From Eukaryota sp. TZLM1-RC (lineage: Eukaryota; Protista; Metamonada: BaSk clade), in contig JAUPSS010000008.1 in NCBI GenBank assembly GCA_040285825.1, positions 620,001 through 684,000 of the forward strand: a DNA stretch of 64,000 bases, given 5' to 3'. Positions 2,671 to 61,060 of this stretch are shown piece after piece. The position numbers and the translations under genes are program-made. How positions within the stretch are numbered: the stretch's first letter is position 1; the number at the start of each line of letters is the position of its first letter. Below the pieces are notes generated by a model, which was given only the letters and a program-made list of their open reading frames with translations, did not search any database and was not told the origin of the DNA.

Positions 2671-5019
2671 TTATATTGTTGGACTTCGAAGCATCTGATT
2701 CCATCGATGTATAGTTTCTGCAAGCTTGGGAGCCAAAGCCCTTCTTGCTATATCAATCTCGTCTAGAATCACTCCCTGAGCTTCTTCTTCTGAAAGATCG
2801 AGCCTGAACTTCTCAGCTACTTTGCTGATGACGTTACGTCCACTATTTATAATTGAAGTCATTTGACTATCTGTAATCAATGCAAATAAAGCTAAAAATA
2901 AATGCGAATGTCTTCTGATCACACTAAACACAAGACAGCAGTATTCTCGGAACTTTCCGAAATACTCTTCTCCCATGGCATAAACCCATCTTTCATCCAT
3001 TCTAATTGGGGTTTGAAAGGGTTTGGGGTCGACGTCCAGCATGTAACCAAAGTCAATGTGAAACAGACAACCAGAGGGAGATAACAAAAGATTATCCAAG
3101 TGACGATCTCTAATACCAAAGCAAAAAGTAATGATCGTATAAGCGGCACAACTAATGGTAAAGTGGTTTATTTTAGAAGTTTGATCCCTAGGAGTCCTCA
3201 AGAAGTGGAACAATTCTTCTCTCGTAAACTCAGAAAGAGCTCTACAATTGGGAACATACTCAATAAGTCCATAATGAAAACCCAGAGGAATGGCCTTGTA
3301 AGGGGTGAGTTTGGCATCAATGCCGGCACTTTTTAGTAATTTATCAGATAGTTGAATTAGTTTAAGAATAAAGTAGTCTTGTCGAAGGTCGTCTCCCTTC
3401 TTGAAAATGACCGAAAATTCTTCAGAATTCTGATCTGTAAACGTGAACCTTACTGGGTAAAAGTTACTCGTGTAGACCTTTACGTTGTTGACTACATCGA
3501 CAATTTCTTGACCCTGATGAGTTGGAAGATGAACAGCAACTGATTTTTTGACAATTGTTGACTGCTTGTCCACGATTGACGGTCTAGAAGAGCGCAAAAG
3601 ACAAGAAAGTCTGGCGTAGGCGGTTGTTGCAAAGGTAGAAAGTGAAGAATTGGTCTTTTCAAACTTTGGATTTGCAATAATTTCTCCCAAATTGACCACT
3701 TCTTCTATAAATAATTTCTGCTTATTCAATAAATTTTTTTGGGTTTTTGATAAATTATCCTTTAATAATTCAAACAATTTGACCAGTAAGGAATGATAGT
3801 GTCCTTCTGCATGATTCATCTCACAAACTAAGATCCAATGAAGTTCATAAGTATCAAAAATATTCAAGACCGCCCGAGAAACCAAAAAATTCATTAATGA
3901 AAGCTCAGTAGAATTTCCCTTTAAGAATCTAAAACTTTGTACCAAAGGAAAAATGAACAAGTTAAAATCAGTACAAGTACACTGATTAAGAATTCTATCC
4001 ACCAAGCCATATTGCTCAAGCAAGGAAGGAATTGGCAGACTGGAAGGAAGCAGCAAAAGTAAATCATTAATTCGAGAAGGTAATTTCCAATTCAACTCAG
4101 ATAAGCAATAAATAGCCTCACTCTCTAAAGCGGGGTTGCTCCAATCAACACTTACTAAAAATAGTAACAGACCTCCATCCAAAGCCCTGAGATAATCCGA
4201 ATTCCTACATCTCCAAATAACTTGCTTTTCAGAGACTGTCAGAGGTTTTATTAGGGAATATTTTGAGTGAATGGAATCAATCAAAGTGATTGGTGGTGAT
4301 ACAGAAGAGTCAGATATATCAGAATTTAGAGCAGAAAGCAAAGAATGTAGTGGTTGAGGTTCTTGACAAGTCTTGACTGGATCGAAAACAGGCTCAGACT
4401 TCAGCCCATTTTTGACCTCCTTGTCCCCCAGTAACTCATGGTGAAACACCGGGAGATCCAAAGATGCCAGATGTACCGTAATCAAAGGAAGAGGGTGCTC
4501 CTGTGAATTTAGAAAAAGGTTGTACATAGATCTTGAACTCAAGTGATCCAACCAACTTTGAGAGTTTTGATTATTGAGGAATTTAATAGCCAACTCACGA
4601 AGATTGAACTGATCGTTGAGTGGTGAAGGACAAAATTTGAGTGTGTGCCATCCAGAGGAATAACGACCGATGTTGTCAAAGAGAGGAAGTGAGCAAAGAC
4701 CTAGGTCTGTGGTAGAAGCAAGTGAAGAGCAAACAAGGGAAAATGACAGGGTAGAAGAAGGGGAGAGGTCAGCAATGGAGACTGGTAGACGAAAACACTC
4801 AGAAACAGAAATACGAACTGTTTGGGAGGGGATAAGAATGGGAGCAAATGTATGTGTCAATGGAGAGGATGCCACGCTGTCAGAGGAGATAGATAGTGTA
4901 ATAGATATTAAGATATTCTGAGATTGTAGTGCTTGTGGTCTGGACCATTCGAAATCAGAAAGTTTAACTAGAATAGGGTACTGCCAGCATTGATCAGATG
5001 AAACGTATTGGAAAGCCAT
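2671..5019 (-). CDS. VPS34: Class III phosphatidylinositol 3-kinase Vps34
   Basis: 782 aa; N-terminal C2-like region, helical domain, kinase motifs IFKKGDDLRQD, DRHLDN, FHIDFG, DPKPF, and C-terminal ETIHRW typical of Vps34. Confidence 0.92.
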   Translation of the reverse strand: MAFQYVSSDQCWQYPILVKLSDFEWSRPQALQSQNILISITLSISSDSVASSPLTHTFAPILIPSQTVRISVSECFRLPVSIADLSPSSTLSFSLVCSSLASTTDLGLCSLPLFDNIGRYSSGWHTLKFCPSPLNDQFNLRELAIKFLNNQNSQSWLDHLSSRSMYNLFLNSQEHPLPLITVHLASLDLPVFHHELLGDKEVKNGLKSEPVFDPVKTCQEPQPLHSLLSALNSDISDSSVSPPITLIDSIHSKYSLIKPLTVSEKQVIWRCRNSDYLRALDGGLLLFLVSVDWSNPALESEAIYCLSELNWKLPSRINDLLLLLPSSLPIPSLLEQYGLVDRILNQCTCTDFNLFIFPLVQSFRFLKGNSTELSLMNFLVSRAVLNIFDTYELHWILVCEMNHAEGHYHSLLVKLFELLKDNLSKTQKNLLNKQKLFIEEVVNLGEIIANPKFEKTNSSLSTFATTAYARLSCLLRSSRPSIVDKQSTIVKKSVAVHLPTHQGQEIVDVVNNVKVYTSNFYPVRFTFTDQNSEEFSVIFKKGDDLRQDYFILKLIQLSDKLLKSAGIDAKLTPYKAIPLGFHYGLIEYVPNCRALSEFTREELFHFLRTPRDQTSKINHFTISCAAYTIITFCFGIRDRHLDNLLLSPSGCLFHIDFGYMLDVDPKPFQTPIRMDERWVYAMGEEYFGKFREYCCLVFSVIRRHSHLFLALFALITDSQMTSIINSGRNVISKVAEKFRLDLSEEEAQGVILDEIDIARRALAPKLAETIHRWNQMLRSPTI

Positions 5020-5043
5020 TCATGAATTGGAGGTGTTCACTGT

Positions 5044-5371
5044 TGTGAATTTCACTTATCATACATTTTCCTATAAAATTCACTCCTGTTTTCAACTTTC
5101 TCAATGTCTACTCACAGGCTGTAAGAGACATGTAGCGTCATTTGACAAAGGCAATCATTTATCAAATGGTTACGTCACTTGAATACACCTACTGTTTTCA
5201 CAGAACAAAGCCTCGCGATTTGATGTATCTAAGTGGATCTGCTAAATGCTACTAAGGTATTTGTAGATCGGTCTCAAAAGTTTTTCAAAAATAAATAAAA
5301 AAAACTAAAAAACTCAAAATGAAATACCTGTGTTTCCAAAGTTTTTGTTTCTGTATTCTCAGGTTCCCCAT
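5044..5371 (-). ncRNA. Putative Fanzor omegaRNA scaffold, family A copy 1
   Basis: About 330 nt of non-coding sequence downstream of the ORF, conserved in three copies, ending in an 11-bp terminal stem followed by unrelated flank. RNA identity is inferred from Fanzor/TnpB architecture. Confidence 0.55.
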
Positions 5372-7300
5372 TCATCTCCTCAACACAACTTCTGGGCAAA
5401 TATATCTTTCCGGCCACAATTCCGCTTTCTTCTTAATTTGAATATTTTTTGCAGCGGGAATATTTCTGTCATATACTATTTCACCCTCAGTTTAAATATG
5501 CATCTGCCATGAGCCTATTCACGGCCATGCAACTACTGGATAGTTTGCTCGTATTAAATTCACTTGTTGACAAGTGCTTCCCGTCTTTATGATAACCAAC
5601 CATTTTTTAAAAGCCCTTTCTGATCCATATCGATTGACTTTTCGGCAATGAGAAGGGAAATTAGCAGAGCCCACAGCAAGGTAGAGTTTTTCAGGATGTC
5701 CAGCCAGCCTTTGAAATTTGTTGAAGCTCTTTTGGAACCGTCTCTCTTTTCGTCTGCAGTTAGCAAATTTAATTATTTTCCATTTGTGGTGATTACTTTC
5801 GAAATACACTTTCCTCCTGATCAAATGCTAATGGTTCAAATATTGGTTGAGATTTTGAACGGAATACTGGTTGGGAGAGTGTTTACTGAGTGAAGGATTT
5901 GTCATGTATCTTCTGCCAGTTGGACAAGGGATAATTCCACATTGATTATCAGTTAAGAAGTAATCACATAATCTAGATTGTCCCAGATCAACGCCAATAA
6001 GCGACCTTTCAGGTAAAATTTCGACTGGATGTCTACATCTTCAACGGGGCATATTTTTAGTGCACTTCAACTGTGTTTCTCTGGTTTTGTTGGCATCAGG
6101 GTCATTTTTCACTTCTTTTTTCGATCTTCGTTTCTTTTTCAGTGGTTCATCCAGCTCATCTGTGTTTTCTAAGTCGCTATTTTATTTTCAAATGTTGAAA
6201 GCAGTGCATTACCATTGATTTTCAATAGAATCTCTTTAAATCTATTTCCCAAACTTTTTCTGTTGATATTAAATTTTTGGTAAGGGCATTGTTTGAATAT
6301 TCAGACAAGTATTTTTGATGAACTTTGTTTAGGAAGATGATCCTTCAATAGTGGGAATTTTTTCACAGAATGGAAAATATGTGAAGGAACCTCATAAAAT
6401 TTAGAACCTTTATGAGAAGCTCAAGGTATTATTCTTTTATTTTCCAGCAATGCATATGAGAAAAGAAAGTGAGTGAGTATTGTGAAATTTTAAGATTAAA
6501 GAGAAAAAGCTCACCAATTTCCTTTGATGAAAAAATGATTTTATCATGTGAAGACACTAGAAAAGCAGTGGCAGGAAATCTTTGAAGAAGATTCAAGATA
6601 CACTTACATGCATTTAATAAAATGAATCATTTTCTTGAATTATTCAGATTGAAATTGATGTAGTGTTCGAGAACAGAATCAACAACTACTTCTTCTGGTT
6701 GGGCTAAGGGTTCATTTGGAAAAAGAGAAAGAAGATACTTGGCACAGACATTTGTTTTGTCTAGAGCTCTACACTGAGCACGAATGAAGTTTTTTGTGCA
6801 GGATTGATAAATTTTAGGTAAATTTGGCTTGACGCCAATTGACGAGTTCGACAAGCAAGGAAAGGCTGAAAGCCCTTTTCTATTGATATAATTACATTTC
6901 TGAGATTGCAACCAATCATTGAGGAAAAGATTGAATGAATTTCTGTAAGGCACTAGAGAATTTTCCCATGAAGAAACAAGACACCTGTCTTGTGGGCACT
7001 CAGGAAGAAATCCACTGTAAAAGATATGCAGTAATTGACGTTGGCCTTTAGATGTGGAAGGCTTTGGAAAAGAACCAGTGGTGATGACGGTCATAAATAC
7101 CATACATCCCGTTCCACTAAAGCTCTAGATGCCAACAAAAAATTTAGAAGAAAAAATTCAAGCAATAAAGAAGCTTCATGACAAATCTTGGTGACCACAG
7201 GAAGGTCAGTCCGAATTTGTTGCAACGCTGCAGAAGTCAGCAGCGAGTTAAGTGCACAAGAGTGAGTGAAGACATGTGACACAAAGGGGATGTTTGACAT
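5044..7300 (-). mobile_element. Fanzor family A copy 1 (near full-length, frameshifted Fanzor/TnpB-like ORF plus conserved 3' tail)
   Basis: ORF pieces 7091-7300, 6627-7103, 5519-5824; RuvC-I LIGVDLG (~6000), LAVGSANF, RuvC-III-position YDRNIPAAKNI. Highly similar to 22654-23640 and 39693-41677; homology stops at ...AATTCACA (5044). Confidence 0.85.
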
Positions 7301-8579
7301 GTAGTGAGGATAAAGAGCTCATCAAATTTTACACTTGTCACCCCATTTTCGACTTCTAGTTACCATTTCTGGGAGATTTTTAACCCGCATCTTGGTTTTG
7401 GCACTATTCAAACACTTTCCTCTCATTTCATAAACTAGGTTCTTATTTCCCTCACTTACCTTCTTTTCCGAGCTTTAGGACTCCCGGTGTACTCTTTCTG
7501 CCGGTTTTTTCTACTCGTCTTTGATAACTATTGTTTACTAATAGTGTACTGATTAAATCAACACCTTCTACTTGTACAAAACTTTTTATATTACACTTTG
7601 ATAAGAGAACGGCATTTCTCTAATCCACAGTACATTCCACAGCTTGCCGTGGTTGTTAAAGTCACAGCGAAAGTCGCTTTACATTATTGATTACAGTTGT
7701 AAGCAGCTTTCTTTCACAAACATGATGGACTTAATCTATTCACACATCAATTTTTCAGTCTCGGGAAACTGTCTAAAAGGGCTGATTTGACACCAAGACT
7801 ACTAGTTGCTGTCGATACTCTTTTTTTCGGATTGAACAACACTGTAAACACCATTCTGTTGAATAGTGAATCACTGCAATTTTGGAATGTTCCTTGCATA
7901 TAGCCTTGAACTAACAAAACTACCACCTTTCTTTAAACACTTCTATGTGGAACTCCTTGGGGTTTTAACTGATCTGAATTGGTCTTGGTCAGCAACAATA
8001 ACAGACCCCAACTATAAGAATATTTTATTATATTGTTGAAGCTTAATATTTCGGTTGAAATGATTTATTTATTGTATTTATTTAACAAAGAAACACTGTA
8101 TCCAATTTCAGTCAATGATAATCAACCACCAAAGTACAAGCAGAGATCAAGAAGTACGGTTGACTGAGTCCAGAAGGCATATATCTAAGCTACACATGCT
8201 AAAACAATGGTGAAGAAACAATTGGAAATTCAATAAACTCAATTTATAATGTTAAATAAAAAACGGGGGGAAGTTATATTTAATAAAATGTATATTCAGT
8301 ATTGATTTTAAAAGTATAAAACTATTGTACAGAATTATCCCTCTGCAACATCAATGGTCGATGATCATTGATGTCCTCCTCCTCGCCAGAATAGAGTACC
8401 ATCTTCATATAGTCTACCATTAGAAGAGGTCTACTTCATCTTAGGGCCATTGACCAATGTTATGTCATTAAATCCTCAAAATTTTCCGTAAGTTCCATTT
8501 GGTTGATTCACTAATTGAAAGGAGGTAATTACTTTCGCTTAACAAAAGGGGTGATTGATGATTCATTTCTGCAAATCAA

Positions 8580-9836: not shown

Positions 9837-12800
9837 TTAATTTATATTCAAATTTAAGGTTATGTTACGAACTAAATTCTGTACAACATCTTCTAAAAGT
9901 TTGAATTCCCATTTGTTCACTGTTGGTTTGTTGTAAGAAACCATAGTTGTAGATGTTATGGTATTATGATGTTGCTTGCACATTGTTTGGAACTCTCCCA
10001 GTAAATTCTTATATTTATCAAAGTTGTCGTTGTTGGGAAAGTGACTCCTCAATAAAGAATGTCGATCAAAGTTACCAGAATCAAACCCAATCAGAGGATT
10101 TTCAATAAATGGAAGTTCAAGTAATCGTGGTTCAACTGTACTCGAAATTGATTGAACCAGATCATTCACTACTAAATGTAACAATTTAGTTTGACGATCA
10201 TCAATTTTGGGAAAATAAACTTCAGAGTTGGAGAAGTTTGGCAATACTATCGGACTATTTAGACTCACATCACAAGGAGAAATACTAATACAACCAAAAA
10301 CATCCCAAGAACAAAAAGCTTGTATTGAGTTCAAAGCATCTTCAGAAGAAAAAGAACCGAAATTTTCTGGTAAAAATTTGGCAATGGAAACATCACCTGA
10401 TGTTGATTGATCCCTTCTTGGACCAATTTCGTGTTTGCGTCGCGACAAACTTCTGAAAGTTTGACTAGATGCTATTTCTTTGAGTCTACAAAGTTCTGAT
10501 TCCGGGTAAGAGTGGGGATCACCCTTTGTTTTTGATGAAAATTTCCTAGTGTCAGCCTTGTATCCTGGGGGAGCCTTGACACTACCGATCTGCGCCCTAG
10601 ATCTGGCAACCGAAGCAACAGTGGCAGTAAGGTGGACAGATCGTCTAGTTAATGGTTCATGATTGGGATCATTGAACAATTCATCGTCCCCTTCACTGTC
10701 AGAATCGCCTGAATCATCACTTTGGTCCCTTTCAAGATATTCTTTTCTCATTGAATCATATATACCACCCAACTTTTGTTTCAAGGTTTCATTAGTCAGG
10801 ACTAGGCGAAGGTCCAGTACCTCATTGATACAACCAGCCAAGACACAAAGAGTAAATGTTACAGTGGTAGCAGGTAGAATCTCTCCACTTGCAGGGAAAA
10901 TGGAAGTGACAAGTGAATGATTAGCTGAAATATTTGAGTTGAGATCAATAGGGACTGAATCTAATCTCCATTTAAACAGATAGTGATCAGTGGAGGATGA
11001 ATTGGTAACTTGAATCATTTTTCTGATAATGGTGCCAGGCAAAGGGCTACAGAACAAAGAAATAGGAGAAAACGAAAGATTTCCCCAAGAATTATTATCA
11101 GACACTGGTAGAAATGACGTCATCGATGATGGTTTGATTGGGAAACTGTACAGTTTGAGATCAACAACATTAAACTTAATTTCAAGCAGAAATTCAACAC
11201 AAAAACCTTGGAATTCAGCCCAAAGCTTTATTTTTTCTGAAAAAAGGCCAAAATTGTCTGAATTGAGAGTCAGACAGACCGATCCAGAAGAATTGCGTTG
11301 AAGAAGAACGTCCTTGAATGAATTAAATTTAAAATTAATCGGCCTTTCGTCCTGTCGCGAGGATTTGGTACCCTTATCCAGTCGAATTCTGATTGGAATC
11401 GTTGAAATGTTGCGAAACGTCATGGCAAAAAAGTGCTTTGAACCAATTGAAACATCACCAAGATCTACAGTCGAAGGTTTGATTCCAGAATCGACGGCAA
11501 CAGGTAGTTGATTAGCACCAGTGACGAATAAAGGAAGGTAAATAATCTGTGACACGTCAATGATTGAGGAATGTTTGGGAAGTGTGGCCGAAAAGAGCTC
11601 AAGGTTGAAAATTTTCCCATTGGCAATCTTAAATACAATATTTGACTTGAAAACTCCAGAGAATGAGTGATTAGCCGACAGTTTTAATATAAAACTATTA
11701 CCTGCTTCAATAGTAAAACAATCAGAACTACAATCAAAAACGTCATCAACACTACAATCACCTTCCTTTTCCCCTACATCATTTACTAACGGAGCATCAC
11801 CTCCACCTCTATGGACTGTTTCCATGGCCCAGGGTTCAAGATCTACTTTGAAGGAACTACTAGAAAGAAGAGAGATTCTAGCATCTACACAACCAACATT
11901 TTGGATTAAAACTTCAAAAATAGAGGAAGGCTCGCCTTCTTGACTCAAAGGAAACGTGATTTCGACAGTTTTCAGCAAAGAAAGAAGCTCAGAGGAGTCC
12001 TTGTCAACAAACCCGCTGGATTCGGCAAATAAAAGTTCATTTTTAGTTGGAATTCCAAGCAATAAATTATTAATTTTGTTGATATTGAATAATGCAGAAC
12101 TACAAGACTTTGGTAAAACATGGTTGATTCCAAATTGACCATTCACGACTTTCAAAGGATTTCTACTGAATGCTACATCATCAATAAACAAAGAAGGGTA
12201 CACTCCAGTCAAAGAAAACCCAATACTACTAGAAACTGATGGTAGAATTACCTTGACTTCACCAGAAATGTGACCCACTGCGTGAGGCGTTACATTGAGA
12301 TCAACAGTCATGAATCCCTTAGCAGGAATGGTAATCGACTGAGGGTTGATAGAAACAGTGGCTAAATGAGCACTATCTTCATTATTGATTTGACCATCTA
12401 ATATCGAGTTATTACCAGCAAAACTTCCAGAGAATTCATAACCCTTTTCTTTGATTATTGACATTAAAGAACACTTCACTGGTGCTGAACTATTATTGTG
12501 CAGAGTTAATGGAAAAATACTAGGTGATCCGATCAAACAATTGCCTAAAAGAAACTGCTCAAAATCAAAGGAAACTGATGAAGGAACTGATGACCCCGAC
12601 AGTTTAATAACATATTTCTCCGTGTAATTGAATGATTTTACGAATAAAACAGCTTCACTAGTGAAGTACCCTTCATCTTCAGGAGCAAATACCAATGACA
12701 TTTCTTCTTTACTGTTACCATCCACAATCCCGTTTCTATGTTGAGCAGAAAAAGGAGAATTTCTGTCAAATTCCCAACAATAATCAACCTTGAGATCGTA

Positions 12801-14828
12801 ATTAACATTAACTACTTCCAAAACTTGAACACTCCGAGTCCCTATTCCTGTATCTCTAAATACTACCGAATCTTTTGAGAACTCAATACAAGGTTTACAC
12901 ACAGTTCCAGACAGCTCTATTGAAGGACAGAAGTGATGTGGCAAGGTAAGGGGATTTTCATTGGACCTACACAGTAGTATCCTCAATAAGCAAGCATGGA
13001 AAAGGTGGTGGAGGTCAATTAATCTATCAACTGGGTGGAATTGAACAGTAATAATAGAGTAAGTTCTAGGAGGGATGATACCCCTTTGTGGTGTAACTGA
13101 AAAAGACTTTGACGTGTTACAGACAAGAATATCAAAAAACTGATCACAATCACCATCATTTTTGATTGAAAAAGTTCTGCAAACTGGCCTATTGGGAACT
13201 GTTGAGCCAAATACTAGTCGTTGAACCGAAACCTTGACATTAGGTATTGGTAAATTATTACTAGAGATGTTTTCAGGAAAAGAATCTCCGAAACAAGGAA
13301 TATTTAAAAAATTCGACGGCCTCGGTTCTGAGACCAACTCTCTCGACCTTTGAAATTTTGGAGTACTGAATATTTCAATATTTTCAGAGTAGAGCTCATC
13401 TTTAAACTTTGGATAAAAGGTTACTTTGATTTCCTTTTCTTCACGAGGACCCACATCTAACCTAGTTGGGGTAACAAAAAAAGGAGCCTTGATAGGTGAA
13501 ATGTTGAGAGTGTAAGTAATATTTGAATAATTAAACAATTTTAGTTTTTTTACTGATTTAGTGTTTGGAAATAACGAGTAAAATTCCAAAAAAGAGTGAA
13601 TACTTTTAATTTCTTGATTGAAATTCTCCTTTCCAAAAGGCAAAATTAATTCGTTCAAAGAAACCATTTTTTGGGGGTCACTCAATTCCTCTAAACCATG
13701 GTTAATGGATTTATCAAACGAAAACTGATTCTTTAACCAAAACAATTCCTCACTTGGAGAACCAATAAAACCATGGAGTTCTTGATAGGATTTGAGGTGT
13801 GAAGGAAGAAGTAAGGGTGGGGTTGTTAATGATCTATGGGGGTCAAGGCAGTTTCCTAATAAATCAAGGGAATAAACAAAAGCAGAATAATCGGGAACCA
13901 AGTATACTCGTTGGTAGTAGTTGCCTTGATTTGATGGATTGAAAGTAACTGCAACTGAACCTGATTGATGACGAGATAGTTGCCATCTAGTAACAGGAAA
14001 CTTAAAGACAGAGCGGCTACTGACTACTGGCGAGGTAAATACTTGAAAACTGATGGGGAAATCAGATTCGTTTTTGACTGTGACAGGATAAGACAACACT
14101 TTCCCCTTCTGAACACTGCCAAAGTCAATCAAACTGCTGGACAATGATAGTTGAGGACTCGCCACCTCCACCTTGACAGAAAAAGTAACAGGAGATGCTA
14201 AACCAGGAACAGATAAAGAAAACAAGTCAGAAATAACAAGACTTGATAAAGAAACGCAATTAACACAAACTTGAATAGCCAGAGTCTCATTAGGGGGAAC
14301 TGTTGCTGACTGAGGGGATAGGGAGAAGACTTTGCTATGGGAAATCAAGGTTTCTGAAGGAGTGGAGGGGGTTGGGGATTGGGTAGGGGAGATGGAGTCA
14401 ATGGTGAAGTAGAGAGGGACGAGAGATTTGTTGCAAATGAACAGGCGTTTGACATGGGAAGAGTTAGGGGGAACAGTACCAACATCAAGAAGTGTGGTTG
14501 AGAGGAAAGGGAACGGCTGTTTGGATATTCCAGTGATTTCTATGGAGTGCTTGCGGGATTCCTGGGGGTAATCTGTAGTGCTAAGAGTGAGAACAAGGTT
14601 ATTGATAAGAGCAGTGCATTCTGGGGGATAAAATGATATAGTACAGGTGAGTTTCGAGTAGGGGGAGATGGTAGTCTCAGATGGTTGTATAGAGAAAGGA
14701 TAAGCAAGTTCTGCATCAACTGTGATAGCAGAAGAAGAAGTGTTGACAATAGAAAAGGGGCGTTCAGATGAGACACCAACAGGCACAAAACCAAAATCTA
14801 CACGATCGTCACATTCAAAAGACAGCAT
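9837..14828 (-). CDS. CFAP65: Cilia- and flagella-associated protein 65-like (repeated ASH/PapD-like domains)
   Basis: 1663 aa with repeated DFG...L/I.N.S Ig-like modules; YYQRVYLV...LDLLGNC and LEPWA segments resemble CFAP65. Confidence 0.75.
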   Translation of the reverse strand: MLSFECDDRVDFGFVPVGVSSERPFSIVNTSSSAITVDAELAYPFSIQPSETTISPYSKLTCTISFYPPECTALINNLVLTLSTTDYPQESRKHSIEITGISKQPFPFLSTTLLDVGTVPPNSSHVKRLFICNKSLVPLYFTIDSISPTQSPTPSTPSETLISHSKVFSLSPQSATVPPNETLAIQVCVNCVSLSSLVISDLFSLSVPGLASPVTFSVKVEVASPQLSLSSSLIDFGSVQKGKVLSYPVTVKNESDFPISFQVFTSPVVSSRSVFKFPVTRWQLSRHQSGSVAVTFNPSNQGNYYQRVYLVPDYSAFVYSLDLLGNCLDPHRSLTTPPLLLPSHLKSYQELHGFIGSPSEELFWLKNQFSFDKSINHGLEELSDPQKMVSLNELILPFGKENFNQEIKSIHSFLEFYSLFPNTKSVKKLKLFNYSNITYTLNISPIKAPFFVTPTRLDVGPREEKEIKVTFYPKFKDELYSENIEIFSTPKFQRSRELVSEPRPSNFLNIPCFGDSFPENISSNNLPIPNVKVSVQRLVFGSTVPNRPVCRTFSIKNDGDCDQFFDILVCNTSKSFSVTPQRGIIPPRTYSIITVQFHPVDRLIDLHHLFHACLLRILLCRSNENPLTLPHHFCPSIELSGTVCKPCIEFSKDSVVFRDTGIGTRSVQVLEVVNVNYDLKVDYCWEFDRNSPFSAQHRNGIVDGNSKEEMSLVFAPEDEGYFTSEAVLFVKSFNYTEKYVIKLSGSSVPSSVSFDFEQFLLGNCLIGSPSIFPLTLHNNSSAPVKCSLMSIIKEKGYEFSGSFAGNNSILDGQINNEDSAHLATVSINPQSITIPAKGFMTVDLNVTPHAVGHISGEVKVILPSVSSSIGFSLTGVYPSLFIDDVAFSRNPLKVVNGQFGINHVLPKSCSSALFNINKINNLLLGIPTKNELLFAESSGFVDKDSSELLSLLKTVEITFPLSQEGEPSSIFEVLIQNVGCVDARISLLSSSSFKVDLEPWAMETVHRGGGDAPLVNDVGEKEGDCSVDDVFDCSSDCFTIEAGNSFILKLSANHSFSGVFKSNIVFKIANGKIFNLELFSATLPKHSSIIDVSQIIYLPLFVTGANQLPVAVDSGIKPSTVDLGDVSIGSKHFFAMTFRNISTIPIRIRLDKGTKSSRQDERPINFKFNSFKDVLLQRNSSGSVCLTLNSDNFGLFSEKIKLWAEFQGFCVEFLLEIKFNVVDLKLYSFPIKPSSMTSFLPVSDNNSWGNLSFSPISLFCSPLPGTIIRKMIQVTNSSSTDHYLFKWRLDSVPIDLNSNISANHSLVTSIFPASGEILPATTVTFTLCVLAGCINEVLDLRLVLTNETLKQKLGGIYDSMRKEYLERDQSDDSGDSDSEGDDELFNDPNHEPLTRRSVHLTATVASVARSRAQIGSVKAPPGYKADTRKFSSKTKGDPHSYPESELCRLKEIASSQTFRSLSRRKHEIGPRRDQSTSGDVSIAKFLPENFGSFSSEDALNSIQAFCSWDVFGCISISPCDVSLNSPIVLPNFSNSEVYFPKIDDRQTKLLHLVVNDLVQSISSTVEPRLLELPFIENPLIGFDSGNFDRHSLLRSHFPNNDNFDKYKNLLGEFQTMCKQHHNTITSTTMVSYNKPTVNKWEFKLLEDVVQNLVRNITLNLNIN

Positions 14829-15325: not shown

Positions 15326-16613
15326 TTACCATGGCCAAACAAAAGAATCTTGCTTTTGCAAATTGTTTGCTGGATGTTCACGTAACATTGTCATTAAAAA
15401 CCATTGATTTAATTGTAATCTGGAAAAGCTGGCGACGGACACAACCTCATTGATGTATAAATTATCTGATATTTCCTCCTCCAGAGTATCCTTCAGTTTA
15501 TCACTTTCAAACGGTTTTATTGACGGTTTTTCTGTTGAAGAAAACACGGAAAATTGCGGACTAATACAACTGAAGGAAGTGTCAATCATTCGGACACCAG
15601 AGGTATCTTTTTTATAAATAAAATAAAGTGGTGATAAGTAGTTGACATTTTCCTTGTGTGTTGATGGCATAGAGACATCTATGGATTCAATATTGTTTAT
15701 TTGAAATTGCCAGAATGTACTGCAACAAAGCTAATATAGACAGAGCCTAATACAAGAGCAGCATGATATATGTTTGAATTTGGGTGAAAATTGTACTGAA
15801 GAATTTCAAAATTGGTTTAGGAGTGAAACAGAAATTAGTTTTACCGTTCCCTTAAAAACAATACAATTGAAAAATTTGGCAGCAGCTAGTAAAGGTAATA
15901 AAATTAAATCATCAAAACCAATAATCCTGTCCCAAAGTAGAAAAAACTGATCAATGGTTATGTAGTTAACATTTGTACCTAGTTAACGCTAGGAACACCT
16001 TGCCGGCAAAAATGACGACACTGGGGAGGGTAGTGCTTCCCTGCGACGTCAGCAGCTAATTTAATACGTGAATTAACAGAATTATTATTTGAATTATTAA
16101 ATGTTAAATCGTCAACTCCTATCTGAACATACTTGTTTGGCGAAAGCTCTGTGAATTCATTAGCTAGATTGGTTAAGCTAAGAACGTGCATGGAGAGCTT
16201 GATAAGGCCCCATGGTGATAGGGAAGGTTCATTGTTACGGTTAGGAGAAGAGAGAGACTGAAGAACGGAGAACAGTTCCTCCGGCTCCCACACGTAACGA
16301 AGGGACATAAAGTCAACGGACGAGGATGTGACAGAATCTACAAGCGGGAGTTTGCTTTCACGGCGAAGATCTTCCAGGGCTGCGACGACATGGCGTTCCC
16401 AACGACGACGTGCGGAAAGAATGACTGGATGGGTTTCGATTGGAGTGGAGATTTTAGATTTTGTTGATTGAGAGATAGCCCCTCTGGTGTCTTGTTGATA
16501 CACTTGGTGTAAGCACTTGCTACAGATTCAGGACTATAGCGTTGTTTAAGCAATTCTAGTTTCAAACGTCGACGAAAAAACCAATATTCTGTAGTATCTT
16601 TATAGGTACTCAT
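15326..16613 (-). pseudogene. TBC1D19-like Rab-GAP gene, fragmented
   Basis: ARRRWERHVVAAL...KLPL, GLIKLSMHV...ELSP...QIGVDD and, after a stop, DQFFLLWDRIIGFDDL match TBC1D19 N- and C-terminal motifs; the middle is missing or displaced and the frames are broken. Confidence 0.6.
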
Positions 16614-16991: not shown

Positions 16992-18225
16992 ATGCCGTGT
17001 TCCGTCTGCCGGGCGGCCACCCACAACCGACGTACTTGTCCTCAGAGACAAGTGTCATCACCAGATGATAATGGTTGGATTCCAGAAGCAGCGCACCACC
17101 CAAGTACTGGCTTAAATGAGGGCGAAAGGCCACTCCCAGTTCCAGTTCGCCCGCCACCAGACCCTCTCCCGTCTGCCACAACCACGACTGTGCCTGTAAG
17201 CCTCCCAAGATTCTTTGCCTCTCGTGCTGCTCAAGCTATTGAGGCACAGCTTATTCACTTACGAGATGTTGCTTTCTATGCCACCTTATTGGCACGAAAG
17301 CTTCTATTAGAATATCCGCATCTGTCCTGCTGGCTCGCTCACCGTCAATTCTGGTCGCAGTGCTTCGACTGCGTCACCCACAGTCGACCTAAAATTACCT
17401 TTTTTTCGTGGCGGTTGATCCAAACCATTCAAATTTATGTGGTTGGACAACTGGACATTGTTCACAAGAGAATAGGGTAATTGTTGAACAATCTGGAATT
17501 CTACTGAATCCGAAAGCAAAAGTAATTGATTTTCCCCAGCCACTCACTCAATCCTCTGTGAACACTTATTCCGTTGAGAGCTTCAACAGGTATCTCATTG
17601 AAATAGCTTCACTGATAAGGAATGATGAGCAGGAAACAATTTCTTTGGTTTCCCAAACTTTGTCCAATAGTACAGCGAGAGTTTTGAGACGAAATAAGTT
17701 TGATTTTGTGATAAGAAGACAAAAAAGGTTCATTCATTTTATTAACAAAATTAAGAGACTAGCTAATAACAGGGAAACTATTATTTGGTTTGGTAATGGT
17801 GGTAATGGACCTTCTCGACAATCCACCAAAGCCCCAACTAAGAAGTTTCTGACAGAAGTAAAGAAATACTTTGCCAATGTGAAGGTTGGAGATGAATACA
17901 TGACATCTGCCAAAACCAATTGTTGCAAGGTACATCACAGGAAGGTGTATCATGAAGGCACTCGAAGAATCAATAATGCTTACTTTGAATGTCCTAGATG
18001 TGATGAACGCTGGTCTAGAGACATTTCCGCTTCAAGAAATCAGCTAGAGATTGCGATTTCTGAACATTTTACTGGGATCAGACCAGAGACATTTAGAAGG
18101 GAGGTGAGAGAGTGATAGTTGTTTGTATCCATGTATTGCCTTCGGGCGCTGTGATCCTGAAAAGGAAACCGTATAAGGGAATGGAGGAATGCTACTTGAT
18201 GTATGCATTTCCGATGAAATTCACA
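16992..18225 (+). mobile_element. Fanzor family B copy 1 (N-terminal CCHC knuckle, internal deletion near 17400, intact RuvC half)
   Basis: MPCSVCRAATHNRRTCP at the start; ORF 17408-18115 has VAVDPN (RuvC-I), IWFGNG, GDEYMTS..CC (RuvC-II), CPRC..WSRDISASRN (RuvC-III) and RPETFRR. Confidence 0.88.
18116..18225 (+). ncRNA. Putative Fanzor omegaRNA scaffold, family B copy 1
   Basis: GCC-TTCG-GGC (18138-47) and TCCT-GAAA-AGGA (18155-66) tetraloop hairpins, GGAATGC...GCATTTCC stem, TGTGA (18150-54) complementary to terminal TCACA (18221-25). Confidence 0.65.
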
Positions 18226-18260
18226 GAAAGATTGGATTGATGATTTGGCTCTCAACTTTA

Positions 18261-20075
18261 ATGAACAGTTGTCAATGGAGAGATCTTCAATTAGCAGATG
18301 CAACCATTAGAACCATTGAGGCCAATCTAAACTTCCCCTGTCCCGTTCCAATTCAATCCTTGGTTATACCAAACGCTCTCAGTAAAAAGGATGTTGTTGT
18401 CATATCACCCACTGGATCAGGCAAAACTTTATGCTACTTGCTTCCACTTCACACACTTTTGCTCGAGTCCCAGTCCCCCACTGCTTTGATCATTCTCCCT
18501 ACACAGGAACTTGCCCTTCAAGTGTACTCTGTTGCCCAAACCCTGTTTCGTCAGCAAGATCTGTTCTTTGTTTCCCGCCGAAAGACTTTGGGAAATCTAT
18601 CATCCACCACACTTATCATAGGCACACCTGGTGCTCTTCTCAATGAATCCATCCTTCCCCACTTTCCTAGGATCTCCTACCTTGTTTTGGATGAAGTAGA
18701 TCGTCTTTTGGACTTGGGGGGAGGTCAAATGATGGAAACTTGCAAGAAAATCATCAATCTGCTACCAAAAGATAAACGAACAATGTTCTTTTCCGCAACT
18801 ATGGACCCTGAACACAGAAATCTCTGGATCAAGACTTGTCGGTTGCGTAATCCGCTTGTACTGACTCACGATGACGTGGCATTGCAAACATCATCACGTG
18901 ACCAAGGAAGTTTTAATATTCCAGAAAGTTTGGTCAACACAGTCTGGCTAGTGAGTGAATGTGATAAAATGAGCTTGTTTGTTTCTTATTTGGAAAATCA
19001 AAGTGATCCAATCAAAATGATTGTTTTTGTTTCGACAACTGCCATGGTTGATTATCTCTTTCTAGTTTTACCAAGTTTGGTTTCTCATATAGAATTCACT
19101 TTCATACATGGTAAAATGTCCAACACAAGAAGAAGCAGAACATTGGAAGAATTTAAATCAAAAAGTTCCAATCAGAAGTCCCCAGAAGTCTTGATTGCCA
19201 CTGATTTAGTTTCCCGAGGCCTAGACATTTCTAACATTGATACTGTCCTCCAGTTAGACCCACCCCTGGACCCCTCTTCCTTTGTTCACAGAGCAGGAAG
19301 AACTGCTCGAATGGGAAAAAGGGGAAAGAATATTTTAATGTTGGTTGAGCACGAACTTGCTTTTGTGGAGTATTTGTCGCAGAAAGGAATTACTGTTATT
19401 ATTGAAAAAAAGCAAGATTTATTTAATGAATTGCTATTCAATAAATTAAGAGAAATGGCTCTTGAATCATTGAATTTACACCAGGTAGGTAAAAAAGCTC
19501 TTGTTTCCAGTATGAGGGCCTACTCCCAGCATCGATTAAGTTTTATATTCAGATTTAAACGGTTTCAAATTGCTGAAAAAGCAAGGTCAATGGGTTTGTT
19601 AAACCTTCCTAAATGTCCAGAGCTTAACCCAAAAGGAAAACCCAAAGTGAGTTATCCATCTGATTGGAAGTGGGAAAATGAAATGAAAAAGGAAATCAAT
19701 GTTGAGCATGCAAAGCAGAGGAAATGTATTGCTGGAGAGCATAATGATAATGTCAGACATGGACGGTCAAAAATGGAAGAAACAGTCGATAGGAATTTGA
19801 CTTCAATTGACTCACAACTTTTTGCCAATGTTGGTATTGATGTCAATGATCTTAAACAAATGTTTTCTGAACTCAATAGTGATGAATTTGAAAGTCGAAT
19901 TATTGATATTGAGGATTCCTTATTGAGGAAACTGAAAAGGAAAAAAATAACAAATGAAGTTTATTCTTCAATATCCAGTGCTCTTGAGGATTTTACCAGT
20001 AATATGCGAATAGAAGCAAGTAGAAAAAGAAAAATTAATAATAAATCAACCAATAAAAGGAAAAGAAAAGGGTAA
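18261..20075 (+). CDS. DDX55: DEAD-box RNA helicase DDX55/Spb4 (60S biogenesis)
   Basis: SPTGSGKT, PTQEL, DEVD, SAT, DPPLDPSSFVHRAGRTAR, YSQH..FIF, MGLLNLPKCPEL. Start placed at ATG 18261 because the upstream ATG (18189) lies inside the Fanzor tail. Confidence 0.85.
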   Translation: MNSCQWRDLQLADATIRTIEANLNFPCPVPIQSLVIPNALSKKDVVVISPTGSGKTLCYLLPLHTLLLESQSPTALIILPTQELALQVYSVAQTLFRQQDLFFVSRRKTLGNLSSTTLIIGTPGALLNESILPHFPRISYLVLDEVDRLLDLGGGQMMETCKKIINLLPKDKRTMFFSATMDPEHRNLWIKTCRLRNPLVLTHDDVALQTSSRDQGSFNIPESLVNTVWLVSECDKMSLFVSYLENQSDPIKMIVFVSTTAMVDYLFLVLPSLVSHIEFTFIHGKMSNTRRSRTLEEFKSKSSNQKSPEVLIATDLVSRGLDISNIDTVLQLDPPLDPSSFVHRAGRTARMGKRGKNILMLVEHELAFVEYLSQKGITVIIEKKQDLFNELLFNKLREMALESLNLHQVGKKALVSSMRAYSQHRLSFIFRFKRFQIAEKARSMGLLNLPKCPELNPKGKPKVSYPSDWKWENEMKKEINVEHAKQRKCIAGEHNDNVRHGRSKMEETVDRNLTSIDSQLFANVGIDVNDLKQMFSELNSDEFESRIIDIEDSLLRKLKRKKITNEVYSSISSALEDFTSNMRIEASRKRKINNKSTNKRKRKG

Positions 20076-22622: not shown

Positions 22623-22653
22623 TCTTGGAGATATTGTTTATAACAGTGAATAC

Positions 22654-41348: not shown

Positions 41349-41677
41349 GTGGGGACCTGAGAATACAGAAACAAAAACTTTGGAAAAACTGATATTGTTT
41401 TTGAGTTTTTTAGTATTTTTTAGTTTTTTGAAAAACTTTGGAGACCGATCTACAAATACCTTAGTAGCATTTGGTAGATCCACTTAGATACATTGAGTCG
41501 CGAGGCTTTGTTCTGTGAAAGCAGTAGGTGTATTTAAGTGAGGTAACCCATTGATGAAGATCATGATTGTCTTTGTCAAATGATGCTACATGTCTCTTAC
41601 AGCCTGTGAGTAGACATTGAGAAAGTTGAAAACAGGAGTGAATTTTACAGGGGAATGCATTATAAGTAAAATTCACA
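41349..41677 (+). ncRNA. Putative Fanzor omegaRNA scaffold, family A copy 3
   Basis: Conserved non-coding tail; hairpin GATCTACAAAT...ATTTGGTAGATC and perfect terminal stem GTGAATTTTAC/GTAAAATTCAC. Confidence 0.55.
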
Positions 41678-41741
41678 ATAGCACTTGGTGAATATCAAAT
41701 TTATAAAGTAAACTTTGCAATATTTTCCATAGAGCGTTGTA

Positions 41742-44223: not shown

Positions 44224-44808
44224 ATGGCATCACGGAGCCGTGAAAAGTACTCAGCAACAGAGGATTTCCATATTCTTCGATATGTATATGCACAATTGGA
44301 CACTGCAGGTGGTGATGAGTCTAGTCTACATTTGTCAGGAAATTCTTTCTGGAAGGATGCTTCAGTATACATGAAAGAACATCACAACATGGAACGTTCT
44401 CCTCAATCTCTTCGATCAAGGTTTCTACACCGAGAACTTGAACACTACTTTCTCGATAGAAAACTTCCCTTGACAGCACAATCCAGTCCTCCCTGTCCTC
44501 TTACTTCATCTGAGCTCCAAGAGAAAGAAGAGCTTGTGGCTCTAGCGAGTACTTCTTTAGGTTGGGATCAAGAAACTACTCAAAATCCACCTTCTACAGA
44601 CTTTGATGTCTCCAGCAATGACTTTCTTGCATCACCCTCCCCTGATATTTGTGAAAAACCAGGAGAAGAAGACGAAATGAATCTCATCCAAACCATACAT
44701 GACATAGTCAATCATGCTTCAGAACTTGCCTATTCTTTTCAATCCTTGACAGAATTTCATGAATTTATGAAGAAAATTGATAATTTTTTCGACTCGCCAT
44801 TTAGGTGA
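44224..44808 (+). CDS. Rap1-type Myb domain protein
   Basis: REKYSATEDFHILRYV...SGNSFWK...SPQSLRSRFL matches the Rap1/TERF2IP Myb pattern (FT..DD..IL...GN..WK...S.QS.K.RY). Confidence 0.65.
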   Translation: MASRSREKYSATEDFHILRYVYAQLDTAGGDESSLHLSGNSFWKDASVYMKEHHNMERSPQSLRSRFLHRELEHYFLDRKLPLTAQSSPPCPLTSSELQEKEELVALASTSLGWDQETTQNPPSTDFDVSSNDFLASPSPDICEKPGEEDEMNLIQTIHDIVNHASELAYSFQSLTEFHEFMKKIDNFFDSPFR

Positions 44809-44879
44809 CAATGGTACTCAAAAAATGCATGTTTTTATCCATGCTAATAAATCTTAATACTAATAATCTAAACATTCTT

Positions 44880-45800
44880 TCCCATACTGACTGATCGTTG
44901 TCGTACCATTGGTCTACAATTATCATGAATATGAGAGTACGTAATCCTGTACATGTTTAGAGCACTGTTAACATCCCTATCCCACTAGACGCCACATTCA
45001 CTGTTTTGACAATGTAACAGTCCAGGCCATGGGACTAGTTTGACATTGTTTTCTGATTCCAATTTCGCTGAAGATCTTGAATTTTGGTTTCAAGATTTTG
45101 AATAGAATCAACTTCATGATACTGTTTTTTAGCCACTCGCAAGTCATTTTTTTAATCTATTCTTCTTACGTTTGAATCTCTTATAGGCATTTGGATCTTT
45201 GACCTTTACATCGCATTTGGTATCTCCTTCGCGATGATCCTCAACACAAGCAGCGCTTATCTTACTGGTACGATACTCGTCTACCAAGTTTAAGTTTATA
45301 CCATCTTTTCTCAGAATTCTTCTTAGCCTGATTTAGTCTGATTGTGCTGGCTTTACCTTTTCGGTTTGTTTTGCCGTCCCCACACCAAAGCCAATTACAA
45401 TGTTATGAGCATCATCATTTAAGTTGGCTTTTAATCGGTTAACCCAGGCTTCCTCACTCTTTTATTTATTTATATATTTGTATAGCGCCTAAAGAGAGGG
45501 TCTTGGTAAATCGGACAGAGCAATTCATCGTGGAGTAATGTCATTTTAAAATACTCCTTGAATTGCTGCAGATTCAAAGTTTTTTCTGGAATATTCTGCT
45601 AATTTATCAGGTATTTCTTGTACTGACACCTCGGATTGCGTATATGGTAACTTAAATTCTTGGTGAAATCGGGAAGAGATTTAATAGTTTCCTCTTCACC
45701 GTTGATTCTGTTTATAACTGCAGTTTTGGAAGAGTTTTCACTGCTCTCAATCCTAAAAATGATCGAGTTCAAATAGTTTGTTTCTGTTTCTCTGAACTTC
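44880..45800 (-). pseudogene. Fanzor family C remnant (not in the ORF track)
   Basis: Minus-strand translation gives NIVIGFG (~45400), LVDEYRTSKISAAC (~45290) and LLHCQNSECGV*WDRDVNSALNMYRI (~45020-44945); many stops. Confidence 0.8.
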
Positions 45801-53375: not shown

Positions 53376-54030
53376 CGTATATTTCTGTTTTGGGAAACAT
53401 TTCACCTGTCTGTGCACTCTTTATCTGAAATGACAATTTCCAATACTTCAACCACATTCACATGTCTAAACTTAACCATCCAGAGATGATCGGCTTAGAT
53501 CAAAATACGTTAGATTTGAAGACTCTTATTGAGGTCTTCTGAAAGTTAGGGGTCATGTGTTCAGAAAGTACTCGCTGACTGCAATCTTCCACTGGTTTCT
53601 TGATGCAGAGATTTCTCTTGACCAAGCCATTCCACATTCTGGACATGTAAAATAGGCTTCAGACTTTTTCTCGATTGTCTATGAAGTAAAGGTCTTCATG
53701 GAAAACTTTGCAACAGTTCACTTTGGCAGTTCTTGAAACATTTCACATGTGAGTCCAAATCCAAATGCATTTACCAAACCTACTCCAGATATGGTCGTTG
53801 ATTGTTTTATTTATTCCTTTTTTTACAACTGTTATTGAAGGTTTTTCGACAATTAATTGGAAATGATGATGAAAAAAGCGCAGTTTCATTTCATCAAGAA
53901 TACGGATTACTTGATGTAGATGTTCAGCCAGATATTCTGTATTATCATTTTGCCACAAATCAGTAGTTTTGATTTGTTCTGACAGTTGAGCATTTTCTTT
54001 CTTTCAATAGAAACTTTAGACGACCCACCT

Positions 54031-54636
54031 TTATTTACAATTTTCTATAAAAATTTCAAGTTCTACTCTTGAAACGAAATTGTGAATTTCAGTTTGAAAC
54101 AGTTTAGAAAATACATTTTCAATGCTATTGATTCCTCCTTTAACAATATACAAAGACTGAATTACCTTTCTTAAATCTATAGTTAAGAATGGCCCTAATC
54201 CAGTCTCGCTAAACCATCTATGAAACCACAAAGGGCTGTGAGGAATATAGTTGGTTAGTTGGAATTCTGGTTCAATTTGCAACACTTTACAGCGTTGAAT
54301 AAAAAAAGGAAAAAAGAATTCATCTGTGTTGTAGCCAATAAGTAACCCAGGCTTAACGTTAATCAATAAGTCAAAAACTGAACTAATTATATCATTCTCT
54401 GATGAACATAAGTGGATAGAACAGTCCTCTAATTCAGGAATCGCTTTTGTGGAGAAGAAGTGTGACTCTTTATTAAATTGAAATGCATAGGAATGATTCA
54501 AACAAAAAAGAAGAGACTCAAGACAAATAGACATTGATTGAACCTTTGGCTCATAGGAAGAAAACTTTGCCATTTTACCTATGTTATTATTGTTTAGGTT
54601 AGGAGCAACATCAAGGGTTTTAAGTTTTGTAGACAA
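54031..54636 (-). pseudogene. Degenerate family-B DNA polymerase exonuclease-like fragment
   Basis: SEND...KPGLLIGYNTDEFFFPFFIQR resembles the ExoII region (DPD.I.GYN...FD.P...R) with the catalytic Asp lost; no ATG start, and downstream frames are broken. Confidence 0.5.
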
Positions 54637-54943
54637 GTATTGATGGTAGAGGTAAAGTTCATAATTTAAAGAAGCGACGTAGATGATATTCGTCTCACCT
54701 CAGACATGGAAGATCATTTCCACTTGTTAATGGTCTTCATCAACTGTAAAGTACTATAAATACTTCGTGTAATTGATAAAGTCGTTTATACAGACTCTAG
54801 AGAATATAACAATGTCAGGAGGGCGACAGAGACCCAGTTGGATGTCCGATGGAAAGAATAGGGAAAGGAGAAAACGTGACTTGCAATATTTGCAATTCAC
54901 TTGATTCCATTTTTTGCTTCACCTGTTCATCCACTACTAGTCG

Positions 54944-59788: not shown

Positions 59789-59856
59789 GTGGAGTTTGGT
59801 GAAATGGATTTCTATTGTGTCTTCTAATTTTGAATTTGAAAACTCAAATCTACGCT

Positions 59857-60379
59857 TTGTCTCTGAATAATTTTGGTTCTGATGATAGAGGTGATGTATA
59901 CTGTGATTGGATTGATAATTCTGAAGCAATTGTTGACTTTGTCTCATGTAATGTTGCAAATGATACTTTGGTTCACAGAAAACTTAATCCTGTGACTGCT
60001 CTTGATTTTAAAGCAAATGAAAAACATAGAAAATATGACAAAGATATCGAAGAGGCTAATTCTGGTAGAAACACACCACTAGTTTTTATTGCTTTCCCAT
60101 TTTCGATAAACGGTAGACTATCAGTAGAAGCAGAAAATTTGATGAATGACTTCCAAAAAATGGTTCAAGAAGAAACAATGAAAAGATTTGACATTTTTTA
60201 TGGCGTTCTCGGATTCAATTTGCCATTATTAATAGATTACCTCGGTTTTTCTATCGAATAAGAGAAGCTTTAGCTAGACAGCAAGCAGATCAAGATTTTG
60301 TAGAGGAAATCTTGGTTCAATGACAGTCGTCCCATTAGTTATGAATTAATTTATTAAGTGTGCGGGTTCAATAAATATC
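59857..60379 (+). mobile_element. Non-LTR retrotransposon family R3, 3' fragment with probable 10-bp TSD
   Basis: SDDRGDVYCDW, KHRKY, PFSINGRL; flanks AATCTACGCT (59847-56) and AATCTACACT (60380-89). Confidence 0.88.
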
Positions 60380-60389
60380 AATCTACACT

Positions 60390-61060
60390 GTTTTCATTGG
60401 AAATGCATAATTATAATTATTACTTTCAATCATCATTCAAACTTATTCCAAGAACTTACATTCCTGTTGAGATCGTCCATAGACGTTCTAGAATCCTCGA
60501 ATAATTGGCCACCAATCTCAGTGAGCCCATTTCTCCTCTAGAACAATACGTAGCTTTGAAGCTAGTTTTTCTTTTCTTTGTGGTCTCTGGAACGCTTCTG
60601 GTCTTGTTCCATAGTAGTGCTCACTAATTGCAATTTCTAGCTGATTTAGTGATGTAGAAATGTCTCTAGACCATACTTGATTACATTCCGGACAACTGAA
60701 ATGGGCGTTTTGAACTTTAACTTCACCATCAACTTCTCGATAGATTTTTCGGTGTAGTAGCTTGCAGCAGTTCACCTTTGCAGATGTCATATATTCATCT
60801 CCGATTTTGACATTAGCAATTGAACAATGTAACAACTTGAGAAACGCCTTGAGTGGTCTTTTCACTTTTTGACGTGATGTACCACCACCTCCATTGCCAA
60901 ACCACACCTTTACTTCTCGACCATCTGCAAATTTTTTCACTTTGTTGATAATTGAGCTGAGTCTTTTCTGTTTTCTTATAAAGAAGTCAAATGTGTTGAG
61001 GAAATTGTTGTTAGTCAAAGCAGTTGTTTGTTTAATCAAGGGTGTTTGTAGATTCAATCA
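60390..61060 (-). mobile_element. Fanzor family B copy 3 (C-terminal half plus degenerate tail)
   Basis: VWFGNGGGG, GDEYMTSAKVNCC, CPECNQVWSRDISTSLNQ, RPEAFQR; tail end TATGCATTTCCAATGAAA matches copy B1 TATGCATTTCCGATGAAA. Confidence 0.85.

Follow-up and report, generated by a model that had tools for sequence, protein, structure and literature searches.

Polarized docking of Fanzor1 right ends just ahead of host start codons in TZLM1-RC and a sister species

Fanzor copies of the window and their host genes

The DNA considered here is a 64-kb stretch (the window) of the genome of TZLM1-RC (assembly GCA_040285825.1), which we take to be the free-living metamonad Skoliomonas litria; the members of Skoliomonas are free-living anaerobic protists. 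The window combines high gene density and tiny introns with abundant remnants of transposable elements (TEs), among them copies of Fanzor elements, none of which is intact, and the right (3′) ends of most of these copies lie just ahead of the start codon (ATG) of a co-oriented host gene. This polarized docking goes beyond chance, and it is replicated out of sample and in the sister species Skoliomonas sp. RCL; otherwise the elements are like known non-autonomous Fanzor1. The Skoliomonas genome is described in PMC11316075. The copies and the host genes beside them, including their open reading frames (ORFs), are as follows.

5043-7525, minus strand: Fanzor A1 (family A), frameshifted, with the RuvC-I motif IGVDLG; right end at 5043/5044, homologous to other copies out to 7525 at least
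5020-5042, minus strand: predicted guide region, the 23 nt of flank that separate A1 from the Vps34 ATG (5019)
2671-5019, minus strand: host Vps34 (PI3K), ORF intact
16992-18226, plus strand: Fanzor B1, whose C-terminal piece has RuvC D/E/D; it ends on the right with …GAAATTCACAG at 18226
18261-20075, plus strand: host DDX55/Spb4 helicase, ATG 34 nt past the B1 end
22653-23641, minus strand: Fanzor A2, 5′-truncated at 23641; right end 30 nt ahead of the ATG at 22622
22014-22622, minus strand: host ORF of 202 aa, downstream of A2
25286-26430, minus strand: Fanzor B2, 5′ part lost at a retrotransposon tail; hairpin closing on …CTCAG (fold z = -3.7), 47 nt ahead of the YhhN ATG at 25238
24480-25238, minus strand: host YhhN-family gene
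39693-41678, plus strand: Fanzor A3; past its right end come 61 nt and then retrotransposon inserts to ~44150
44870-45480, minus strand: remnant of Fanzor family E, 3′ side facing the stop codon of the gene at 44224-44808
53410-54800, minus strand: remnant of a PolB 3′-5′ exonuclease-Fanzor; end …GTGCACAG at 53410, 34 nt ahead of an in-frame ATG at 53375
59847-60386, plus strand: later retrotransposon insert that separates B3 from the host ATG (59788), with the 7-bp target-site duplication (TSD) AATCTAC
60388-61797, minus strand: Fanzor B3; left arm 61250-61797 common to locus L007

Distance and polarity to host start codons

Six of the eight Fanzor ends in the window lie 23-66 nt ahead of a co-oriented host ATG (p 0.002), the gaps being 23 nt for A1, 30 nt for A2, 34 nt for B1 and for the exonuclease-Fanzor, 47 nt for B2 and, once the retrotransposon insert is removed, 66 nt for B3; A3 was counted as a miss in the 75-nt test. 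An earlier note on this DNA had placed such ends just 5′ of host ATGs, and its coordinates hold, except that the ends are usually one base longer (…AATTC(A/T)CAG) and the gaps 1 nt shorter: in alignments of the copies, identity breaks off after AATTC(A/T)CA, and copies defined by their TSDs assign the following G to the element. Removing the TSD-flanked insert does bring B3 close to its ATG, as that note had argued, at 66 nt rather than about 68, and the end reads GAAAACAG and not AATTCACA or AATTCTCA. Relatives of A2 in metagenome contigs have matching ends at 22650-22654, other flanks, and homology that continues past 23641, which confirms where A2 ends on the right and that its 5′ side is truncated. 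A second in-frame ATG of DDX55, at 18240, stands 13 nt past the B1 end, and the gene starting at 53375 runs to 52782. The pieces of family E, family C (~62214) and the exonuclease-Fanzor (53410) were found by a profile scan of the window and are absent from the earlier list.

A1, B1, B2 and B3 sit in divergent gaps, where both orientations face an ATG, and since this applies to four of the six copies listed earlier, the window alone says little on polarity. For this reason, 12 loci (L001-L012), chosen by Fanzor protein homology alone, were fetched from TZLM1-RC plus two sister species, including Skoliomonas sp. RCL and GEM-RC; they contain 21 scorable Fanzor 3′ ends, which were tallied by hand, with host ATGs taken from gene prediction. 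A test of distance and orientation, which the earlier note had proposed for the whole genome, was thereby run on these independent loci, and 15 of the 21 ends were found at most 75 nt from a co-oriented annotated host ATG, at 15-71 nt in families A, B and C, at 0-3 nt in family F, and at 1, 5, 45 and 57 nt in RCL. A null drawn from 47 TE-free gaps puts the probability of a co-oriented ATG within 75 nt at 0.09 (length-weighted) or 0.22 (gap-weighted), and against the latter the result has p = 1.6e-6. Of 27 retrotransposon 3′ ends scored likewise in the TZLM1 DNA, none lies within 75 nt of a co-oriented ATG (Fisher p 5e-8), a control to be read with the caveat that retrotransposon copies often insert into existing junk. 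The host ORFs downstream of Fanzor ends remain intact.

Family F, whose end differs (…TGTTATAGAC..TCTG(C/T)A), lies 0-4 nt ahead of an ATG in four of four cases (L004:5521, L005:17906, L006:15797 and L007:1414), three of which are annotated host starts. Newer elements are also found stacked just downstream of older Fanzor ends (L011:9364-9397; window 62214; L001:8918).

The right end and its hairpin

About 23 terminal nucleotides, TGCAT-N7-GAAAWTCWCAG, are common to very different families in two species, and leave-one-out scores of this motif are mostly 14-29 bits. The right end closes a hairpin, often with CTG(T/A)G paired with C(A/T)CAG, and the fold is significant in 5 of 13 ends (B2, L005, L009, L010 and L011a, z -3.1 to -4.8); a structured 3′ non-coding end gives way abruptly to a variable flank. 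A search of Rfam gave no matches. In characterized Fanzors the guide is the 3′ flank (PMC10432273), and the last stem of the omegaRNA scaffold abuts the guide (10.1101/2023.08.09.552727; PMC10432273). By analogy, the right end is consistent with such a scaffold, and it would serve just as well as the end that a shared mover recognises. If the known guide rule applies, the guide position would be occupied by the 5′ leader of the host gene or by its first codons. The earlier idea of a promoter-targeted, RNA-guided element is borne out as far as polarized docking at start codons goes, whereas flanks within families are alike at chance level, except weakly in family A.

The encoded protein and the want of a transposase

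In the B clade the RuvC acidic residues (AIDPN / GDE(F/Y)xTS / SRDIS) and a C4 zinc finger are kept (PF07282). The third catalytic position is Asn in A1, A2 and A3 of the window (RuvC-III DRNIS) and Asp in the copy at L003:341. A protein search with the C-terminal piece of B1, a copy with a ~870 nt internal deletion relative to L001, returned 11 matches, all in TZLM1-RC, and a metagenome scan with a Fanzor alignment yielded no confirmed loci. Full-length relatives occur in RCL, in families of 14 and 10 members, many of 592-605 aa, and also in GEM-RC. One RCL protein, P0036, is 47% identical to B1 over 233 aa; its AlphaFold model (pLDDT 87.6) has SpuFz, PpFz and GtFz as top Foldseek matches (E 3e-14 to 7e-11), its best seven PDB matches are all Fanzor1, and Fanzor2 appears with E 7e-3, so that the protein is assigned to Fanzor1. 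On this model, the elements are predicted to encode a ~600-aa Fanzor1 with an enlarged REC.

The earlier description of the elements as transposase-less stands: no transposase forms part of the element in the window or in the 12 loci. A Mutator-like element (MULE) as partner transposase was rejected, since the MULE piece in L008 interrupts a Fanzor ORF. DNA transposons with terminal inverted repeats (TIRs) of the MULE, Mariner or hAT type were likewise rejected, as self-comparison of L009 and L010 shows no inverted repeat and TSD length varies. A PolB-type 3′-5′ exonuclease coding sequence stands directly upstream of, or fused to, Fanzor in several copies (window 53410-54800, minus strand; L006:12600-15800; L011:14935-15966 beside 12494-14665).

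Insertion junctions

Intact copies were found in the RCL loci L009 and L010, 2613 bp long and 97.8% identical, in which Fanzor is the sole annotated gene and self-comparison reveals no inverted repeat. The L010 element lies at the ATG end of a gap of ~850 nt and is flanked by a 10-bp TSD (AATGCCTAAA) that includes the RtcB start codon; in L011 a 13-bp TSD follows an older element at a distance of 9 nt from its end, and in L002 a 5′-truncated family A copy has a 10-bp TSD exactly at the truncation point. These TSD-bounded junctions are true insertion sites. The TSDs of L010 and of the family A copy in L002 are preceded by TTTG and by TTT (ATTT/TTTT). Possible left TSDs in the window, GAAAGATT at 14852 for B1 and TAGCACTT at 39229 for A3, measure 8 bp each; the former could be chance and the latter is uncertain. 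Matches of 11 bp to the flanks, found upstream of A1 (inside CFAP65) and of B2 (inside a retrotransposon), were treated as chance.

Right ends are fixed and left ends variable, often truncated or carrying captured host genes. Decayed CBP20 lies antisense and head-to-head with Fanzor in two unlinked copies of the B2 family (L003:8411-8800 and L006:9254-9700; E 6e-32), and copies of the B3 family have an antisense coding piece in common in their left arms, in the window a host-like one at 61250-61797 that we tentatively read as VPS28-like. Two RCL Fanzor families with 37% protein identity have ~360 nt of upstream DNA in common at 90% identity (L010:9581-9935, L011:9511-9864), which suggests that 5′ modules were swapped. 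The left arms may be read as captured divergent host promoters, in which case the ancestors of these elements would also have landed at gene starts. A cap-binding protein as passenger of an element that targets 5′ ends deserves mention, and CBP20 is probably a captured neighbour.

Further features bear on the Fanzor copies or on their surroundings.

15700-16500, minus strand: remnant of a TBC-domain gene, middle missing, head-to-head with B1
23678-23841, minus strand: fragment of Fanzor family F, stacked upstream of A2
62214-62307, minus strand: Fanzor family C, represented by its right end alone and stacked upstream of B3

The TBC remnant, which from its motifs we take to resemble TBC1D19, is probably a captured left-arm passenger of B1. 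The ORF at 44224-44808 presumably has a Myb/Rap1-like N-terminus and is without a Pfam match. CRE-like retrotransposons (reverse transcriptase plus restriction-like endonuclease) are dense in this DNA, and inserts with 7-bp TSDs have struck Fanzor ends. Copies of the retrotransposon family D4 (window 14866 and 59847; L003:11100-13115) lie antisense, in two cases with the truncated 5′ end 37-58 nt from an ATG. A 1.1-kb insert at 42070-43175 has identical 143-bp direct repeats, similar to long terminal repeats, and a matching repeat occurs at 27414-27557.

Element ends and host transcription

The earlier note had pointed to similar motifs upstream of uninvaded genes. The short form AATTC(A/T)C does occur there more often than expected (6 vs 2.2 within 60 nt of the ATG, 66 genes; p 0.016, uncorrected and post hoc), as does C(A/T)CAG (13 vs 5.8 in the same set; p 0.004, likewise uncorrected and post hoc), whereas 38 upstream regions of uninvaded genes are without the full 23-nt motif (best scores average -2.0, against -2.1 in shuffled sequence). 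The initiator of Trichomonas is HCAHW (PMC7370421); before Skoliomonas genes this motif is not enriched relative to dinucleotide shuffles (164 vs 171). The end motif was rejected as a general host initiator, given that the full motif is absent and HCAHW, TCAYW and CCTTT are unenriched, which leaves the weak excess of C(A/T)CAG alone.

Most element ends contain several upstream ATGs and a strong stem, so that a translatable host mRNA would probably begin where the element ends or just beyond. In cases with 0-5 nt of native leader left, the element must supply the start, provided that the allele is expressed. Promoter supply by the element end, judged from sequence features, is plausible in some cases, if unproven. 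A bolder scheme, a promoter-swapping gene drive, appears doubtful to us: the element would insert between host promoter and ATG, the host gene would start anew from the right end, captured promoters would drive Fanzor, and a guide copied from the leader or start codon would destroy element-free alleles, leaving the host dependent on the element for essential genes.

A candidate mechanism and its rivals

With modest confidence, we favour a non-autonomous Fanzor1 that is moved in trans and in a one-ended manner, with a fixed right end and a variable TSD of 10-13 bp, like the Helitron2-derived CRe-1/2/3; captured antisense left arms favour such DNA-based one-ended movement over retrotransposition. 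The fuller scheme, a trans-acting HUH/Rep mover on transcription-opened DNA combined with a Fanzor that cuts empty alleles, is held more tentatively. The mover would most likely be an HUH/rolling-circle Rep encoded elsewhere, and it would pick DNA opened by transcription near the start site, hence the polarity. Captured bidirectional host promoters would drive the Fanzor ORF, and the omegaRNA would read past the right end, such that a guide of 14-21 nt equals the host leader or first codons. An intact Fanzor would then cut the empty allele only, favouring the filled one (homing or retention), while transcription of the host gene would begin at the element end or slightly beyond it.

Several observations weigh against this reading. 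Six of the 21 ends in the 12 loci miss, four of them at the stop-codon side (family F in L001 and in L006, the exonuclease fusion in L011, and GEM-RC L012) and two running into TE debris, and in the window the family E copy at 44870-45480 points at a stop codon (no terminal motif was found in this remnant). Targeting is thus strong, not absolute. The positions of host ATGs depend on gene prediction; those of the conserved genes look right for their families. L009 is without a TSD, and the L011 TSD is preceded by TCTC instead of a T run. Taken singly, the hairpins of family A and B1 are weak (z about -1 or worse), and no family has more than one or two compensatory, covarying pairs. No HUH or Helitron gene occurs in the loci examined, in which asymmetric TIRs were not searched for specifically. 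The GEM-RC Fanzor (L012:10001-11648), without recognisable end motif and without a co-oriented downstream gene, is possibly a relic or a domesticated copy.

Among the rivals, the same targeting could be combined with retrotransposition in the style of short interspersed elements (SINEs), carried out by the resident CRE-like retrotransposons on an RNA that ends at the right end. The combination of 5′ truncation and variable TSDs, here of 10-13 bp, is typical of target-primed reverse transcription, and potential helpers are dense here. However, there is no poly(A) or tail repeat, and no end is common to resident retrotransposon families, whose own 3′ ends lie near no ATG (0/27); the common left end of L009 and L010 lies well upstream of the likely Fanzor start and includes antisense host DNA; and an omegaRNA reading past the end should bring donor flank along, which is not seen. 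We regard this route as unlikely, and a SINE or processed-retrocopy class proper was rejected, as there is no poly(A) or repeat tail and no 3′ end common to a resident long interspersed element. Somewhat less likely again is random insertion followed by selection, in which the 3′ part acts as an outward promoter and only sense insertions before genes survive, a version of the earlier note's promoter supply that dispenses with targeting. The ORFs of essential-type genes (RtcB, DDX55, Vps34) do stay intact even where the native leader is as short as 1 nt, C(A/T)CAG shows a roughly twofold excess before uninvaded genes, and CACA ends fit the Trichomonas initiator (PMC7370421). Yet such rescue accounts for tolerance and not for enrichment, young RCL copies stand 1-5 nt from the ATG in gaps of ~850 nt while retrotransposon copies survive throughout gaps, and HCAHW is unenriched before Skoliomonas genes.

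The Fanzor ribonucleoprotein might itself choose sites by partial guide match, with docking perpetuating itself and host repair copying the element in. Over their first 6 nt, the flanks of family A resemble one another slightly (2.7 vs 1.7 matches, p 0.017 uncorrected), family F hugs the ATG in all four cases, and nested insertions into older Fanzor ends occur (L011; window 62214); given that the flanks of B1, B2, C and RCL copies are not alike, and those of F no more alike than ATG-anchored controls, we consider this improbable. Very improbable is an artefact of a compact genome with gaps so short that every insert adjoins an ATG, a suspicion the earlier note had voiced of its own pattern. 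Divergent gaps indeed have a median of 110 nt and hold four of the six copies first listed, but the gap-based null (0.09-0.22) falls far below 15/21, retrotransposon ends in the same DNA score 0/27, and Fanzor copies in tandem gaps likewise face forward. Least probable of all, in our estimate, is that the elements are spliced from the host leader as introns (IStron- or Introner-like), the terminal CAG serving as acceptor. Most ends finish in CAG, and RCL left ends hold GT or GC after an A run, whereas host introns are ~30 nt long, start with GT(A/T)TGT and have a branch point fixed beside the acceptor, CT(C/G)AY-NN-YAG (L003, L004, L006, L010 and window 57370); element ends are without the branch motif, and truncated copies are without a donor. 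The spliceosomal model was rejected on this consensus. RRS1 has one intron with a GC donor.

Relation to known systems and significance

Insertion near gene starts as such has precedents: Tf1, Mutator and P transposons prefer the 5′ ends of Pol II genes, as here, and unlike here they work with a DDE transposase or integrase and without an RNA-guided nuclease. To our knowledge, none of them has a fixed polarity of right end to ATG at 0-75 nt. IS200/IS605 elements make no TSD, in contrast to those described here. On the other hand, the TnpB of IS200/IS605 uses a flank-derived guide to cut the empty site and bias inheritance, similar to what is proposed here; it differs in having TnpA in cis or in trans, and the accessible text describes no start-codon docking (Meers 2023, 10.1101/2023.03.14.532601).

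The closest precedent is the set of CRe-1/2/3 elements of Chlamydomonas, non-autonomous Fanzor1 carriers of the Helitron2 type with intact 3′ ends, 5′ truncation, TSDs of 7-19 bp and T-rich targets (Bao and Jurka 2013, PMC3627910). With the present elements they have in common that no transposase is encoded, that 3′ ends are intact and 5′ ends often truncated, that TSDs vary in length and that the 5′ side carries captured sequence; the target is T-rich in two of the three TSD cases here. Unlike here, no preference for gene starts is reported for them in the section consulted, and their ends match verified Helitrons, whereas the loci examined here yielded no such partner. Spu-1/SpuFz1 and other Fanzor1 (Saito 2023, PMC10432273) are alike in fold, in RuvC D/E/D plus zinc finger, and in a structured 3′ non-coding end beside a variable flank, with ghost-like solo ends; Spu-1 differs by its 33-bp TIRs and TA TSDs from the elements described here, which have no TIRs, TSDs of 10-13 bp and ATG docking. 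Replitrons (Craig 2023, PMC10288648), eukaryotic elements of the HUH type, resemble them in orientation-specific insertion and variable TSDs, and differ in encoding Rep and in having direct terminal repeats and fuzzy right ends, none of which is seen here. Our literature search found no report of start-codon docking by a Fanzor family and no paper joining Fanzor and Metamonada.

The natural role of Fanzors and the movement of transposase-less ones are open questions (PMC10432273, PMC10530073). In the present case, several unrelated Fanzor families in two sister species agree in a single end motif and a single polarized target zone, and RCL, a cultured organism, has many apparently intact copies, so that the mover, the target-adjacent motif and the homing model are directly testable. 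If the promoter-swapping gene drive were true, the host would depend on the element to express essential genes. The pattern points to a way in which cargo of 2-3 kb could be inserted directionally at start codons in eukaryotes, with the ORF unbroken.

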